Both the position numbers and the translations under genes were made by a program. The notes under the pieces were generated by a model, which was given only the letters and a program-made list of their open reading frames with translations, ran no database searches and was not told where the DNA came from. Positions 2 to 7,223 of a stretch of 64,000 nt of DNA are shown one piece after another; position 1 is the first letter of the stretch, and each line of letters begins with the position of its first letter. The stretch is from sequence record NC_006883.2; one strand, 5' to 3'.

Positions 2-46
2 AAGTGGCACACATACACAAGAAAAGGGATTTAGACTCGCTATAAT
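2..46 (+). promoter_or_regulatory. Early-type promoter: AAGTGGCACA box (2-11) plus TATAAT (41-46)
   Basis: Box to -10 spacing matches the other copies at 4605, 5180, 6060, 6518 and 6767; ORF starts at 73. Confidence 0.7.
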
Positions 47-3331: not shown

Positions 3332-3697
3332 ATGCAACCAACAGAGGATAACGTAGGAATATCAACGACTTGGTCTATTGTAGGACTGAGAAGTTTAAAG
3401 AGCAACGGGTTAGTTGATAGTGTGTTATATCAAGTGGTCTGTAGGGAACAAGTAGGCATAGGATTAAGTGCGACAATCAAGACGAATAGGTATAGTAATC
3501 ACTATGAATTGGAAGGAGATTCACCTACAATAGCACTTGCAGATTTATCAGAGAATAATGTAGTAGGATGGGTGAAGACAGGGTTAGGAAGTACAGAGGT
3601 TCAGAGGATAGAAAACAAGGTAGCACCAGCAAAAACTTTGTATGATTTTGATGAGAATAGAGAGATAAGAGAAGGGAATAGTCTTCCTTGGTCATAG
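3332..3697 (+). CDS. Phage protein resembling tail-fibre-associated accessory/chaperone proteins (TTWSI...VVGWVK...LPWS)
   Basis: Motif pattern recalled from cyanophage fibre-adjacent proteins; late-promoter-like GTAAATA at 3298-3304. Confidence 0.55.
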   Translation: MQPTEDNVGISTTWSIVGLRSLKSNGLVDSVLYQVVCREQVGIGLSATIKTNRYSNHYELEGDSPTIALADLSENNVVGWVKTGLGSTEVQRIENKVAPAKTLYDFDENREIREGNSLPWS

Positions 3698-3799
3698 AGA
3701 GATTCTAAGGGGGTTACTACTGAAGAACTTACAGGGCATTTGTAGTCTATTATACCATATTGTCTTGAAATAGTATTAAAATAAGGTTTTAAATACCTT

Positions 3800-3807
3800 T
3801 ATAAATA
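3800..3807 (+). promoter_or_regulatory. T4 late promoter consensus TATAAATA in non-coding DNA
   Basis: Exact gp55 consensus; no ORF downstream; AT-rich context could be chance. Confidence 0.45.
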
Positions 3808-3929
3808 TATCTTCGTGTTTTATAAGGATACTACCCTTGAGTATCTTAGTGTAACCTTGGTGTATGTTTTAAGGGGTTATAAGCATAAAAATACCTGATA
3901 AAACCACTCAGTCTTATGCAGGTTTAGCG

Positions 3930-3958
3930 AGCGTACCATGAGGCGAGCGATCTGTCAA
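3930..3958 (-). promoter_or_regulatory. Minus-strand sigma70 promoter TTGACA-N17-TACGCT
   Basis: tgtcaa at 3953-3958 and agcgta at 3930-3935 on + strand. Confidence 0.55.
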
Positions 3959-4028
3959 GTCTCAGGAATTTTTTTTCTCCATAAGGACACAAAGTCTCTT
4001 CGAGATCTTCGTGATTTATGCGTGGAAA

Positions 4029-4240
4029 ATCTAGTCGAGATATGCACATAATCTCGTGTTGACAATCTCGACTAGATCTGGTATAATATCACTATACAAG
4101 CAATCAATCTCGACTAGATTCTCATGTATTATCAACTAGATTATGAACTAGATTCTCATCTCGACGAGATCTATGACGCATCATCATATAGTACACATAC
4201 ACATCTAGATCATCATGACGAGATGTATGCACGTCGAGAT
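4029..4240. repeat. Iteron-like cluster of ATCTCGACTAGAT repeats (inverted and direct)
   Basis: Reverse copy 4029-4041; exact copies 4065-4077 and 4107-4119; 1-mismatch copy 4158-4170; partial copies 4131-4153 and 4203-4240. Confidence 0.85.
4059..4087 (+). promoter_or_regulatory. Consensus sigma70 promoter TTGACA-N17-TATAAT embedded in the repeats
   Basis: Perfect consensus; a repeat copy fills the spacer; no ORF downstream. Confidence 0.8.
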
Positions 4241-4256
4241 ACATCATATGTAACAC

Positions 4257-4285
4257 TTGCACAACGTCATCATGTGTGATATAAT
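4257..4285 (+). promoter_or_regulatory. Sigma70-like promoter TTGCAC-N17-TATAAT
   Basis: Near consensus with correct spacing. Confidence 0.6.
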
Positions 4286-4335
4286 GTAACACATAACGCA
4301 TTATAATGCACACACTTGTATGTGTCACACATGGG

Positions 4336-4399
4336 TGTGCAGGTTTATGAATTGGCACAAAGATCTGACTTAGGTGTGCCGCCTAAGAAACTGTATTAT
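4336..4399 (+). promoter_or_regulatory. Dyad TGTGCAGGTT-N4-AATTGGCACA, hairpin 4369-4387, -10 TATTAT (4394-4399)
   Basis: Same elements as other early promoters; box to -10 spacing is about 5 nt longer. Confidence 0.55.
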
Positions 4400-4439
4400 A
4401 GTCGATCCTCATCAGAAGTCATCCGACCTTGTGACAGTT
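4395..4439 (-). promoter_or_regulatory. Leftward early-type promoter: AACTGTCACA (4430-4439) plus TATAAT (4395-4400)
   Basis: Canonical spacing on the minus strand; imperfect GTCG/CGAC inverted repeat between. Confidence 0.65.
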
Positions 4440-4491
4440 TTATTTCTGGCACATAGGCATTAATTCTTGTTACCTAATAATATTTCATCGC

Positions 4492-4546
4492 AGGGGGAGT
4501 GTCGAACGTTGATCAAGGAGTTACATCTCTCCTACCTTCCTCTTTT
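4492..4546 (+). ncRNA. Candidate small structured RNA (three-way junction plus U tract)
   Basis: Stems AGGGGGAG/CUUCCUCU, GUCGA/UUGAU and AGGAG/CUCCU, then UUUU; no ORF; flanked by convergent promoters. Confidence 0.4.
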
Positions 4547-4555
4547 GTTATTCTT

Positions 4556-4600
4556 ATTATAGCAACACCAACACGGAAATCTACCTGTCTTGTGCCACTT
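4556..4600 (-). promoter_or_regulatory. Leftward early-type promoter: AAGTGGCACA (4591-4600) plus TATAAT (4556-4561)
   Basis: Canonical spacing; left half of the dyad 4591-4614. Confidence 0.7.
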
Positions 4601-4604
4601 TAAT

Positions 4605-4649
4605 AACTGGCACACTCTATACACCATTCGCTTCAATCTGGTGTATTGT
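4605..4649 (+). promoter_or_regulatory. Early-type promoter: AACTGGCACA, ATACACCA/TGGTGTAT hairpin, TATTGT
   Basis: Canonical spacing; ORF at 4679. Confidence 0.75.
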
Positions 4650-4678
4650 AAGAGAGTACAAAACAAATGAACATTTAA

Positions 4679-4930
4679 ATGATTCAATCAGAACTTTTGG
4701 GAAGGCACTTCTGGATCTCTCCTGATGGAGATTTTGCCAGTTGCCCCACCTTTGCAGATGGAAACCCTGATGTTACTAACACCGATTACCTTGAGTGTTG
4801 GGAGGGTGATGATCTTACCGTGCTTGAGTTTAATGAAATCATTAAGATCTATCAACGCCTTGTGCATCGCAAAGAATTTGGCATAGGAGGTTGGGGTTTA
4901 CCTGATTGGGCAAACAACATCTTTTCTTAA
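4679..4930 (+). CDS. Hypothetical early protein, 83 aa
   Basis: ORF track; downstream of promoter. Confidence 0.7.
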   Translation: MIQSELLGRHFWISPDGDFASCPTFADGNPDVTNTDYLECWEGDDLTVLEFNEIIKIYQRLVHRKEFGIGGWGLPDWANNIFS

Positions 4931-4935
4931 GATTT

Positions 4936-4969
4936 GAGGGGTTCACACACCCCTCTTTTTTGCTATACT
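4936..4969 (+). terminator. Hairpin GAGGGG/CCCCTC plus T tract, directly followed by -10 TATACT (terminator and probable promoter)
   Basis: 6-bp GC stem, TTTTTT, TATACT at 4964-4969. Confidence 0.6.
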
Positions 4970-4994
4970 TAATTTGTACACACGAATCATAGAA

Positions 4995-5177
4995 ATGAAT
5001 CTCTCCAAAGAAGATCTTCAGATTATCAACGAAGTTTTCTGCCAAGCATACTGCTTCGATCTCCCTGAGAAATGGGATGAGGAGGCAGAGGAGTATGATG
5101 GAGAAGAAGAAACCAATTTCAATTCTACCCGATTCTCTGAGGTTTGGGATAAGATCTCAAGGGAACAGGACAGATAA
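4995..5177 (+). CDS. Hypothetical acidic early protein, about 60 aa
   Basis: ORF track 4974..5177; ATG at 4995 lies downstream of the -10. Confidence 0.7.
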   Translation: MNLSKEDLQIINEVFCQAYCFDLPEKWDEEAEEYDGEEETNFNSTRFSEVWDKISREQDR

Positions 5178-5179
5178 CA

Positions 5180-5224
5180 AACTGGCACACATAAACCCCA
5201 TTCTACGGAGTGGGGTTTTATAAT
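5180..5224 (+). promoter_or_regulatory. Early-type promoter: AACTGGCACA, 11-bp hairpin with TACG loop, TATAAT
   Basis: Canonical spacing; AAGGA RBS and ATG at 5251. Confidence 0.8.
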
Positions 5225-5250
5225 ATTAGTATAAGTTTCAACCTAAAGGA

Positions 5251-5757
5251 ATGAACACCATCACACCAGAAATTCAGTATCAAAACCTCTATGAGCAACT
5301 CTATACCCTGTGTGCAGATCAGGGGTGGGGCGATCCTTTCAGTTATGCCCGTTCCCGTGAGATTCATATGGCAGGTATTTTGGGGCATCGTATTGCAGAT
5401 GACTACTCTGGGGCAGATGCCTTTGACGAAGAGGGAGGGTGTGAGTATAAAAGCACTATCGGTAAGAACATCAACGCCACATACAACGGAATCTCCGTGC
5501 AGGATACGTGGGAGGAGCAGGAGAGATACCTTATTGAGGATAAGATCGGCAAATACACTCATCACTATTATGCACGGTACGAAGGAGGAAAGATTGCAGA
5601 GGTATGGAAACTCAATGCTGCTGACGTGCTAAGAATAGCACTACCAAAGGCAAAGAGGCAGTACCCAAAGAAGAGAGCAGGGAACGCAAAAGATCCCCGT
5701 ATTGGTATTACCATCTCACGGGCAGAGATCACAACCCACGGTGTGCAGGTTATCTAA
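5251..5757 (+). CDS. PvuII-like PD-(D/E)XK endonuclease, 168 aa
   Basis: GADAFDEEGGCEYKS aligns by eye to PvuII GNDAVDNAGQEYELKS; C-terminal YARYEGGKIAEVWKL...KDPRI...HG resembles PvuII FAIYRGIAIEAIYRL...NNPKI...HG; similar length. Confidence 0.7.
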   Translation: MNTITPEIQYQNLYEQLYTLCADQGWGDPFSYARSREIHMAGILGHRIADDYSGADAFDEEGGCEYKSTIGKNINATYNGISVQDTWEEQERYLIEDKIGKYTHHYYARYEGGKIAEVWKLNAADVLRIALPKAKRQYPKKRAGNAKDPRIGITISRAEITTHGVQVI

Positions 5758-5801
5758 CTGGCACACTAAGGGGTTTACAGATCCCCTCAAAACTGTACAA
5801 T
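5742..5801 (+). promoter_or_regulatory. Early-type promoter: dyad TGTGCAGGTT-N4-AACTGGCACA, AGGGG/CCCCT hairpin, TACAAT
   Basis: Spacing within 1 nt of canonical; ORF at 5831. Confidence 0.8.
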
Positions 5802-5830
5802 AAGTACATACCAAACAACAGAGAGCATCA

Positions 5831-6061
5831 ATGCAACTCAACAAACTCGGCACTAATCAAACAGAGATTACACTTGCCGATGGTCACAAGGTATTTTTCT
5901 CCTACAACACTCCCGTAGCGTGTCAGACACCTGACTACGAATACTACAGAACAGAGCGTAAGTGGAGCGTAACAACATCACGCCACATCAGCAAGTGGTT
6001 AGATGGAGTTAATGCCACAGTAATGCCACAGGATTTCTTCAACACCCTGACAGCAAACTAA
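5831..6061 (+). CDS. Conserved-type small phage protein (FSYNTPVA...SVTTSRHI), 76 aa
   Basis: ORF track; motif common in phage early genes. Confidence 0.8.
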   Translation: MQLNKLGTNQTEITLADGHKVFFSYNTPVACQTPDYEYYRTERKWSVTTSRHISKWLDGVNATVMPQDFFNTLTAN

Positions 6062-6125: not shown

Positions 6126-6263
6126 ATGACTTTCAACCGCTTCGATGACTACCTCACTGATGATGCTATTCAAGCACTCATGGAGGATGCCATCTCTGAA
6201 ACACTTTCAGATGACGCAAAGAAAGATCTTGATTCTTATCTGAATTCTAAAAACGATTTCTAA
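6126..6263 (+). CDS. Small acidic early protein, 45 aa (MTFNRFDDYLTDD...)
   Basis: ORF track 6072..6263; start corrected to lie downstream of the promoter. Confidence 0.65.
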   Translation: MTFNRFDDYLTDDAIQALMEDAISETLSDDAKKDLDSYLNSKNDF

Positions 6264-6266
6264 CAA

Positions 6267-6401
6267 ATGACTCAAGTCACTTTGAAAAACACTAAGGCAC
6301 AAATCTTTGATGCGTTACAAAGTGTTAAAGATGTAAGAGAAGAAAGAAACGCTCTTGCAATCCTTAGTATAATACTATTCACAACCACCTGCCTTTTTTA
6401 A
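6267..6401 (+). CDS. Small protein with hydrophobic C-terminus, 44 aa
   Basis: Read manually; tightly packed with neighbours. Confidence 0.6.
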   Translation: MTQVTLKNTKAQIFDALQSVKDVREERNALAILSIILFTTTCLF

Positions 6402-6518
6402 ATGCAACCTTTAACAAATGAAATCTACGCAGCACTCAAAGAAGCAGAGCGTAGACAAAAGGAAGAGGTTCTCACATATGCACCACGCAGACGAACCTCA
6501 ATCTTAAACGATTATTAA
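6402..6518 (+). CDS. Small protein, 38 aa (MQPLTNEIYAALKEAERRQK...)
   Basis: Read manually; abuts the upstream stop; ends at the next promoter box. Confidence 0.55.
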   Translation: MQPLTNEIYAALKEAERRQKEEVLTYAPRRRTSILNDY

Positions 6519-6562
6519 ATTGGCACTCACCCCCTTCACAGGGGGTTTTTTATTGGTATAAT
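6518..6562 (+). promoter_or_regulatory. Early-type promoter: AATTGGCACT, ACCCCCT/AGGGGGT hairpin with T tract, TATAAT
   Basis: Canonical spacing; the hairpin also looks like an intrinsic terminator. Confidence 0.8.
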
Positions 6563-6587
6563 AAAAGAGTAATAAGCAATCATTAAA

Positions 6588-6767
6588 ATGAGCAGCATAC
6601 ACAACGAAGCATTAATGGAAACCTGCTTTGACGAAGCGTGGGAGCAGTTCCGTGTTCATAACAAGTTAACCCCTGATATGATGGAGGAGTTATGCTCAAT
6701 ATCAGTAGGCACAGTTCAGCATATAGAAAGAACCGCCCGTAAGATGTTTGAGAGTGCCAGTTCGTAA
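6588..6767 (+). CDS. Small early protein, 59 aa (MSSIHNEALMETCFDEAW...)
   Basis: Read manually; lies between two promoters. Confidence 0.7.
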   Translation: MSSIHNEALMETCFDEAWEQFRVHNKLTPDMMEELCSISVGTVQHIERTARKMFESASS

Positions 6768-6811
6768 ACTGTCCACCGACCCTCCATTCGTGGGGGGTTT
6801 TCCATTATACT
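6753..6811 (+). promoter_or_regulatory. Early-type promoter: dyad AGTGCCAGTT-N4-AACTGTCCAC, hairpin with TTCG loop, TATACT
   Basis: Canonical spacing; ORF at 6837. Confidence 0.75.
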
Positions 6812-6836
6812 ATTCTTATACAAACAAACATTCGTT

Positions 6837-7031
6837 ATGAGTTCTTATCCTACAACTGAAGTGAAGGTAAACGGAAGAGTATGGAAGGTTACACGACTCA
6901 GAACAGCACACGGAGCAAAGACTAATAAGTGGGTGAATCAGATTAAGGGAGGCAGCAGTAGAGTGAGGTGTGCTTCTAATAATGGAGTCACTTCTAACAC
7001 TAAGGCGACAGCACTTATGGACGTGCGTTAG
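6837..7031 (+). CDS. Small basic early protein, 64 aa
   Basis: ORF track; downstream of promoter. Confidence 0.7.
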   Translation: MSSYPTTEVKVNGRVWKVTRLRTAHGAKTNKWVNQIKGGSSRVRCASNNGVTSNTKATALMDVR

Positions 7032-7194
7032 GGGCAGTGCCGTTCGTTCGTGATTTGGCAGGGGTTCGTCGCCCCCGCCCCCCCGTTTAAAAATCACTAA
7101 CTACCCTAACCTACAAAGTGTTACGAAAGCGAGAACAATATTCCATCAAACTTCAAATTTTTTTTCGCTGTTAAAAAACGCCCACAAGGTCGAC

Positions 7195-7223
7195 TTGCAA
7201 AAAATACTTAAGTGATATATAAT
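7195..7223 (+). promoter_or_regulatory. Sigma70-like promoter TTGCAA-N17-TATAAT
   Basis: Correct spacing; overlaps the track ATG at 7222. Confidence 0.65.

Follow-up and report, generated by a model that had tools for sequence, protein, structure and literature searches.

Well-known examples of operator arrays are the OR region of phages lambda and 434, the Arc and Mnt operators of P22, the omega heptad arrays of plasmid pSM19035 and the parC repeats at the parMR promoter of plasmid R1. Short repeats and promoters also occur together at the replication origins of phage T4, where ori(uvsY) and ori(34) are R-loop primed, a promoter transcript being used at ori(uvsY), and oriE has iterons and the RepEB protein. 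A third kind of element known from T4-type phages is the promoter-early stem-loop (PeSL; Arbiol et al., 2010, PMC2839356; Comeau et al., 2014, PMC4122927). Here we compare these systems with a locus at positions 3960-4680 of a 64,000-nucleotide stretch of DNA ("the window"), in which a 13-bp repeat is clustered around a promoter, P1, and within the small gene PSSM2_098 that follows it. The stretch belongs to Prochlorococcus phage P-SSM2 (NC_006883.2 / AY939844.2; 100% identity over 2 kb around the locus), and record positions equal window positions + 62000, which places the locus at 65960-66680 of the record. With a probability of roughly 0.6, we take it to be an operator-controlled promoter within a cluster of promoters of several classes, where a dimeric protein would repress or time P1 and convergent transcription would add antisense control. 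A first-pass annotation of the same DNA had proposed a replication origin, a packaging site or a regulatory hub read by a dimeric phage protein; the hub fits the dyads, the site in the promoter spacer and the conserved opposed promoters described below, and the origin and packaging site found no support among the features compared.

The 13-mer ATCTCGACTAGAT is present exactly at 4065-4077 (site O2) and 4107-4119 (O3), and its reverse complement at 4029-4041 (O1), an arrangement that the first-pass annotation had recorded accurately and that is far beyond chance. A fourth site, O4 (ATCTCGACGAGAT, 4158-4170), is a perfect palindrome one mismatch away from the 13-mer. Half-site hexamers (CTAGAT, CGAGAT, ATCTAG or ATCTCG) occur 16 times in 3990-4245 against 0.16 expected, with at most two in any other 256-bp stretch of the window, and a cluster of 13-mers with two mismatches or fewer is found here only across the 252-kb P-SSM2 genome, which was scanned in pieces for the 13-mer and for consensus promoters. 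The array as a whole is made up of scattered half-sites and of 13-bp dyads that point either way and whose centres are 36, 42 and 51 bp apart. P1 (4059-4087, + strand) reads TTGACA-N17-TATAAT, a match at all 12 positions just as previously noted, with TG ahead of the -10 box and O2 filling the spacer; the genome has nine such perfect promoters in all. Its transcript would start near 4094 and reach the PSSM2_098 open reading frame (ORF) 30 nt downstream, with O3 lying in the leader of the small gene at about +13 to +25. The operator-type sites upstream of the promoter (3997-4057) consist of O1, a full inverted 13-mer, with a half-site on either side of it (4001-4006 and 4051-4056), and are kept in relatives.

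Because the 13-bp dyads occur in both orientations and one of them overlaps the core promoter, the array has the anatomy of a repressor operator. As in the repressor-operator promoters named above, short dyad or heptad sites are grouped around one strong promoter, one between the -35 and -10 boxes and others upstream and downstream, in both orientations. The locus departs from those systems in that the array extends over ~120 bp of the controlled gene's own coding sequence, in that P-SSM2 is a lytic, T4-like phage with no lysogeny or partition to control, and in that no cognate protein was found among the candidates checked below.

Homologous DNA was retrieved from IMG/VR by exact conserved words (loci are labelled L003, L032 and so on) and compared together with the sister phage P-SSM5, which is 97.4% identical to P-SSM2 over the same 2 kb and differs from it by a 1-nt indel just upstream of PSSM2_098. 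Alignment to relatives, one of the checks put forward in the first-pass annotation, finds several promoters conserved, the P1 hexamers being identical in 11 of 17 homologous loci, and the repeats present in 14 loci. In every one of these 14 repeat-bearing homologs a half-site sits in the -35/-10 spacer, against the -10 box, with others upstream and in the leader. Three loci (L029, L033 and L042) keep the promoter, the gene and the flanks with zero repeats at the promoter or in the ORF. Tandem promoters were seen in several relatives: L003, L009 and L010 have a second full promoter, TTGACT-N17-TATAAT, ~60-90 nt upstream of P1 with an operator word beside it, and L032 has two perfect promoters in tandem with an operator word in the spacer of each. 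The sequence TTCGTGT is repeated 5-7 times in these relatives (the L003 group and L032). Three exact IMG/VR matches to the promoter 17-mer (L014-L016) lie in unrelated DNA and were dismissed as chance.

The first-pass annotation saw no credible ORF between 3697 and 4679, which is incorrect, as PSSM2_098 is annotated at 4124-4279 (+ strand, 51 amino acids) and is, judged by the way its sequence has evolved, a real protein-coding gene. Related phage contigs hold at least 20 distinct variants, and all indels among relatives are multiples of three. The forward frame is open in 17 of 17 sequences, compared with 11 of 17 for the antisense frame chosen in the P-SSM5 annotation. The ratio of nonsynonymous to synonymous polymorphism (pN/pS) in the conserved block is 0.41 in the PSSM2_098 frame and 0.86-1.24 in the others, save one antisense frame at 0.56. 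The predicted protein is acidic (charge about -7) and rich in Tyr, Asp and His, and its C-terminus has a conserved motif (Y-A-R-x-D-x-x-Y-E-x-L-A-Y-R-H-Y-A type). When 1.84 billion representative proteins were searched with a profile, 35 clusters were recovered; no Pfam or PHROG family was matched, and the AlphaFold2 (AF2) model is helical and of low confidence (predicted local distance difference test score, pLDDT, 64).

PSSM2_098 carries eight half-site hexamers, at 4136, 4148, 4158 and 4165 (the latter two forming the palindromic O4), 4203, 4205, 4219 and 4235, which are read mostly as Leu-Asp codons and also as Asp-Glu and Arg-Asp. The copies of the 13-mer said to decay as far as 4240 are therefore largely codons of this gene. 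The half-site type varies by lineage, and the type inside the ORF matches the type at the promoter: P-SSM2 and L022 have mostly CTAGAT (Leu-Asp) in both places, and L032 has CGAGAT alone at promoter and ORF, its peptide reading Arg-Asp where that of P-SSM2 reads Leu-Asp. As this amino-acid change is non-conservative but the DNA word is kept, selection on the DNA, or local gene conversion, would account for the pattern rather than selection on the peptide, and the matching types suggest that the intragenic copies are part of one cis-acting array with the promoter sites. It is distinctly unlikely that the repeats are functionless, a by-product of a Leu-Asp/Arg-Asp peptide in PSSM2_098 whose words were copied upstream by slippage or gene conversion. 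In-frame codons of the ORF (LD, RD and DE(I/M)) do make up half of the copies, and the array is missing in some lineages that retain the gene. However, neither the three exact 13-mers nor the best dyads are in the ORF, and their places relative to the -35 and -10 boxes are fixed in many diverged loci; the peptide switches from Leu-Asp to Arg-Asp with the operator type in L032, L008 and L023 while the DNA word is kept, and the single base by which O2 of P-SSM5 differs from that of P-SSM2 makes that dyad a perfect palindrome.

The same array bears on a replication origin, in which the 13-mers would be initiator-bound iterons or the P1 transcript an R-loop primer, a proposal that we consider very unlikely. 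In its favour, the repeated-motif array is dense, unique and beside strong promoters, one relative (L026) has four direct ACGAGAT repeats upstream of the promoter, and the locus shares with T4 origins the combination of a promoter with short repeated sequences in a non-essential region. Iterons are normally longer (17-22 bp), direct, regularly spaced and accompanied by an initiator gene and an AT-rich unwinding element, whereas the array has its 13-bp dyads in both orientations and at three different spacings, contains no direct 17-22-bp iterons, and always places one site in the promoter spacer, which is the position of a repressor site. No AT-rich unwinding stretch was seen either, the guanine-plus-cytosine (GC) content being 0.36-0.38 in 3960-4680 compared with 0.35 for the window, and the lowest 60-nt value past the promoter (0.28) standing at the 19th percentile of the window. 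The neighbouring proteins are acidic, and no initiator, helicase, helicase-loader or DNA-binding domains were found in the products of PSSM2_097, 098, 099 and 100. The R-loop version is countered by P1 itself, which has a plain sigma-70 consensus; compared with the T4 origins, the locus has no MotA-type middle promoter, no downstream unwinding element and no initiator gene, and its repeats are dyads overlapping the core promoter. Lineages such as L029, L033 and L042, with promoter, gene and flanks in place and no repeat, argue against an essential origin. Cumulative GC skew, another check suggested at the outset, climbs steadily through the site with no turn, a weak test in a genome with nearly all genes on one strand.

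That the repeats act in RNA, the leader and ORF copies binding a RegA-type translational repressor or pairing with antisense transcripts, is hardly probable. O3 and the eight intragenic half-sites do lie within the P1 transcript, P-SSM2 encodes regA, and the conserved leftward promoters discussed below would yield complementary RNA. Against this, three or four sites, including the exact inverted copy, are upstream of the P1 start, one lies in the untranscribed spacer, and the presence of both orientations suits double-stranded DNA and a dimer.

The right half of the locus is characterized by a second kind of element, a 24-bp palindrome (TGTGCCA-N10-TGGCACA) present in three copies 30-31 nt from -10 boxes, all three of which are missing from the first-pass annotation. 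Palindrome 1 (4336-4359) is degenerate, palindrome 3 (4430-4453) reads TGTGACA-N10-TGGCACA, and palindrome 4 (4591-4614) is perfect, with promoters on both sides and a hairpin energy of -9.7 kcal/mol (z = -4.2); TGGCAC is not exact in the left arms of palindromes 1 and 3. A rightward promoter had been placed at 4336, where our scan found no sigma-70-type match, that position being the left arm of palindrome 1. The -10 box of the predicted PSSM2_099 promoter (TATTGT, 4644-4649, + strand) is 30 nt after the TGGCAC (4608-4613) in the right half of palindrome 4. In P-SSM2, AACTGGCACAC recurs where small genes end, at the stop codon or just past it, and behind it come a GC hairpin, a -10 box and the start codon of the following gene.

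The distance from every TGGCAC in the P-SSM2 genome to any good -10 box has one sharp peak, with 10 sites at a spacer of 30 nt and two at 31 nt compared with ~0.7 per other offset. All but one of these 12 TGGCAC-N30/31 composites are at record 53.9-68.6 kb, at about a dozen gene boundaries. Of 234 TGGCAC sites in 33 related loci, 101 follow the 30-nt spacing, and after a further scan of related IMG/VR contigs there were 306 distinct composite instances, with the consensus tgtgcCAgTT-N3/4-aAAcTGGCACA, 29-30 nt, TATaAT. The distance itself is constrained, because the spacer sequence is not conserved and is often without a hairpin. A sigma-54 site (TGGCAC-N5-TTGC) was rejected as the identity of the TGGCAC motif, there being no TTGC at the proper position, and sigma-54 is to our knowledge absent from cyanobacteria. 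Four genes, PSSM2_084 and three for DNA methyltransferases, also have the 24-bp palindrome within their 3' ends, in frame and translated as V-P-x-x-E/K-V-A/T (record 44640, 55757, 60626 and 61988, the right half-site of the last reaching window 5-10). TATAAT lies 30 nt beyond the in-gene palindrome at record 55774, 60643 and 62005, forming a promoter element inside coding sequence.

These palindromic cassettes resemble PeSLs in that an intergenic sigma-70-type promoter is combined with a stem-loop, repeated through a hyperplastic ORFan region and tied to cassette gain and loss. They differ in that their palindrome, 24 bp long and sequence-specific, keeps a constant 30-31 nt from the -10 box, whereas a PeSL has a variable G/C stem between the -35 and -10 boxes; here, a variable GC hairpin is a second one, often found with a T-run in the gap between TGGCAC and the -10 box. 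Cyanophages were outside the coverage of the PeSL papers (PMC2839356, PMC4122927). The palindrome may be bound by a dimeric activator, or may work as an RNA hairpin or as a site of recombination. A counterpart is present in the small-gene block (43-54 kb) of Syn9, a cyanomyovirus of another genus, as a TGTGCCAGTT...AAGTGTCCAC or TGTGCCAGTT...GGTGGCACA palindrome followed after ~30-35 nt by a -10-like box. The Syn9 palindrome is found in intergenic regions at 46.3, 47.2, 48.6, 49.1, 51.0 and 51.2 kb, and the box ~30-35 nt downstream in five of the six (TATAAG in four), with none evident at 48.6 kb. A novel regulatory element of the early genes of Syn9 was reportedly described by Doron et al. 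in 2016 (ISME J), and the palindromic cassette is probably this known cyanophage early-gene element. The two phages have the same kind of element before genes of the small block; at the P-SSM2 locus, in contrast, it is placed for use in both directions, with no gene following on the left, and we regard this bidirectional use as a new detail.

Three predicted promoters of the right half point leftward, each at the prescribed distance from a palindrome. Pm4 (4300-4328, - strand; GTGACA-17-TATAAT, 11/12) has its -10 box (reverse complement of 4300-4305) 31 nt from the left arm of palindrome 1, and its ATTATA box is invariant in seven sequences. Pm2 (4395-4422, - strand) has TATAAT (reverse complement of 4395-4400) as its -10 box and ATGACT as its -35 box; exactly 30 nt separate the -10 box from the reverse complement of 4431-4436, which is the left half-site of palindrome 3. 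Pm3 (4556-4583, - strand) has the -10 box TATAAT (reverse complement of 4556-4561), the -35 box TAGATT and the same exact 30 nt between its -10 box and the reverse complement of 4592-4597, the left half-site in palindrome 4. Leftward promoters had been claimed at 4395 and 4556, and both are borne out by relatives, Pm2 appearing as TTGnnn-16/18-TATAAT in 11-12 of 13 homologs (perfect in the L003 group) and Pm3 as T[AT]GATT-16-TATAAT in 10 of 13. Pm3 was the sole strong leftward case found genome-wide by the exact TGGCAC search. A rightward promoter claimed at 4257 does score 10/12 at 4258-4285 (P2, + strand; TGCACA-16-TATAAT with TG), overlapping the PSSM2_098 stop codon, but is kept only in the closest relatives (the P-SSM2/L005/L011 subgroup), and P2 is a weak candidate promoter.

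A further conserved segment of the right half is an invariant non-coding core of 22 nt (4484-4505, + strand; TTCATCGCAGGGGGAGTG-N-CGA), with an AT-rich -10-like box ahead of it (4475-4483). It is followed by a terminator-type hairpin (4516-4552, + strand) with a stem at 4516-4520/4529-4533, a loop around TACATC and then a pyrimidine/U-rich tail. The exact 18-mer of the core was found in 10 IMG/VR contigs, the core is invariant in 15 diverged sequences and single-copy in P-SSM2, and no reading frame stays open across it among relatives. An all-against-all ORF comparison over the core was set aside as uninformative, the DNA itself being conserved. The hairpin stem exists in nine versions whose inner four pairs covary (GC/CG/AT/TA), with a conserved hexaloop and a U-rich tail on the + strand only; covariation was assessed by a loop-anchored count, the MAFFT alignment having misaligned the stems for RNAalifold. 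The segment 4484-4552 suggests a small RNA or a 3' untranslated region (UTR), the hairpin marking the predicted end of a rightward transcript. Core and hairpin would be either the 3' end of the PSSM2_098 message, initiated at P1 or P2, or a ~60-nt RNA made from the -10 box at 4475-4483, and the leftward transcript of Pm3 would be complementary to both. An invariant 22-nt stretch followed by a covarying hairpin and U-rich tail is also seen in small trans-acting RNAs and 3'-UTR elements, from which this predicted transcript differs in that the core/terminator region matched no Rfam family at gathering or permissive thresholds and the core has no complementary target in the P-SSM2 genome. At the scale of the whole window there was no Rfam match at gathering score, with only two chance-level matches (E up to 10) in 3600-4800, and no tRNAs were found.

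It is doubtful that the right half (4280-4680) is a graveyard of PeSL-kind cassettes that lost their genes by recombination, with leftward promoters and a core that are functionless now. PeSLs have been proposed to mediate such shuffling (PMC2839356; PMC4122927). In P-SSM2 the palindrome-plus-promoter cassette is repeated between genes about a dozen times, and cassette content varies among relatives, L043 being without the 098 cassette, the L003 group having an extra gene and L008 and L013 having a replaced middle segment. Relatives of the right half diverge by ~30% outside the core and terminator, yet across these lineages the 22-nt core is invariant and the terminator stem covaries, and the leftward -10 boxes hold the 30-nt rule and have conserved -35 boxes. 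The locus L032 even has two core-plus-terminator modules, at 4677-4771 and 6349-6443, ~1.7 kb apart, which indicates that the core plus terminator can duplicate or move as a unit. Core invariance, stem covariation and the kept promoters thus argue that this is not dead DNA.

The best conserved of all promoters here, Pm1 (3930-3958, - strand), was, like the terminator hairpin at 4516-4533, absent from the first-pass annotation. It has the -35 box TTGACA (reverse complement of 3953-3958), a 17-nt spacer and the -10 box TACGCT (reverse complement of 3930-3935), and the T-run at 3972-3979 forms an A-tract upstream of the -35 box on the - strand. Pm1 was present with exact 17-nt spacing in 24 of the 24 loci with enough sequence, its hexamers invariant and its spacer variable, and together with P1 it constitutes a pair of conserved host-type promoters facing apart. 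A Pm1 transcript would run ~150 nt to Module A (3783-3807), an invariant small hairpin (AAGGT/ACCTT) followed on the + strand by TATAAATA (3800-3807), which is a box like those of T4 late promoters. On the - strand the module reads as the hairpin and then ATTTTAAT, possibly the end of the leftward RNA. An exact 25-mer of Module A was found in 25 IMG/VR contigs, and the module is invariant in a 17-sequence alignment and single-copy in P-SSM2. No other part of the interval is so widely conserved, and this invariance exceeds what a hairpin or a late promoter alone would need.

The best reading of the locus, in our view, is a transcription-control region within the early 'hyperplastic' block of the phage. 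P1, a host-type sigma-70 promoter, would drive PSSM2_098, and a dimeric DNA-binding protein, of phage or host, would co-operatively occupy the ~16 half-sites that lie upstream, within the spacer and leader and through the first two thirds of the ORF, thereby shutting or timing P1. Pm1 would send a short non-coding RNA leftward, toward Module A. The three palindromic cassettes, two or three of which may fire leftward as well, would produce transcripts that are antisense over the conserved core/terminator (4484-4552) and the PSSM2_098 message.

The protein that would read the array was sought with Pfam and PHROGs among the neighbours, PSSM2_070-077 (one of which is annotated with an ImmA/IrrE-type domain) and two proteins annotated as 'transcriptional regulators'. 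The neighbours and annotated regulators checked, which represent a small part of the proteome, yielded no DNA-binding domain and no candidate of the helix-turn-helix or ribbon-helix-helix type. PSSM2_098 itself is far too acidic for a DNA binder of the array. PSSM2_099 was considered as the regulator on the basis of its presence at 18 of 19 operator-bearing and 0 of 6 operator-free loci, but it is very acidic and the association was taken as synteny, the gene being the downstream neighbour at all operator-bearing loci but one.

Several points weigh against an operator-controlled promoter with antisense control. The search just described found no DNA-binding protein for the 13-mer, and the neighbouring proteins are acidic, with isoelectric points of 4.2-5.2, and without known domains. 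Operator presence follows phylogeny, and the covariation between promoter and intragenic sites rests on few independent lineages, making it suggestive and no proof; the intragenic repeats could also spread via slippage or gene conversion with no selection for binding. With regard to the RNAs, the candidate small RNA of P-SSM2 folds no better than shuffled sequences (z = -0.6), and RNAalifold found only the invariant 5-bp hairpin and no covarying structure in the leftward RNA of Pm1. Finally, every transcript start, end and timing class given here for P-SSM2 is inferred, and literature searches found no transcript map or origin map of this phage.

An unlikely but more far-reaching version of this control would be a timing switch, in which the early palindromic promoters fire leftward at the onset of infection, and their antisense RNAs, together with a protein polymerising over the array from about -110 to +150, coding sequence included, silence the strongest host-type promoter of the block until release at a set moment allows the small acidic protein to be made; alternatively, the array would be a nucleoprotein origin or genome-organising site. 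If true, either would be a kind of regulatory device so far undescribed in T4-like phages. Cyanophages are without motA and asiA (PMC5780444), and such a device could bear on how cyanomyoviruses delay host-type 'middle' promoters in the absence of MotA/AsiA.

The control interval is bounded by PSSM2_097 and PSSM2_099 and lies in a long run of small, mostly unnamed rightward genes (PSSM2_056 to _103), a block of small ORFs of the kind called 'hyperplastic' by T4 workers. PSSM2_099 (4679-4930, + strand) encodes an 83-amino-acid acidic protein of phrog_13427, function unknown. Further downstream, PSSM2_100.1 (window 5251-5757) encodes a 168-amino-acid protein of phrog_35715 with a D...E-x-K pattern around DAFDEEGGCEYK that resembles, at the level of sequence, the PD-(D/E)XK nuclease motif. 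A second stretch of ~960 bp without RefSeq-annotated genes is found at window 6263-7222, where the P-SSM5 annotation has three small genes, and includes two further hairpin-plus-TATAAT cassettes, one with TTGGCAC and the other with TGTCCAC; a GC-rich hairpin-like stretch is seen near 7.0-7.1 kb of the window. GC content is 0.42 at window 4001-6000 compared with 0.31-0.37 across most of the window, and the cassette block may have had a history differing from that of its surroundings.

Some of what is presented here was already known, namely the annotation of PSSM2_098, operators and cassettes as kinds of element and, probably, the early element as published. The unique operator array with its covarying intragenic copies, the small acidic protein family and the invariant core with its terminator appear to be undescribed so far. 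A cautionary aspect of the analysis is that 'decaying iterons' can prove to be codons. Beyond this locus, the rule of TGGCAC, 30 nt and TATAAT is usable to annotate hundreds of promoters in marine phage contigs, and the interval yields two candidates, a small acidic protein family and a possible small RNA. The order of early, middle and late expression in T4-like cyanophages is only partly known, and a late-type box, two divergent host-type promoters, three palindromic elements predicted to be used in both directions and what would be an operator-guarded promoter are brought together here in an interval of ~1 kb. In a virus-host pair that is ecologically dominant, the locus therefore offers a compact test bed for studying antisense control and the timing of phage transcription.

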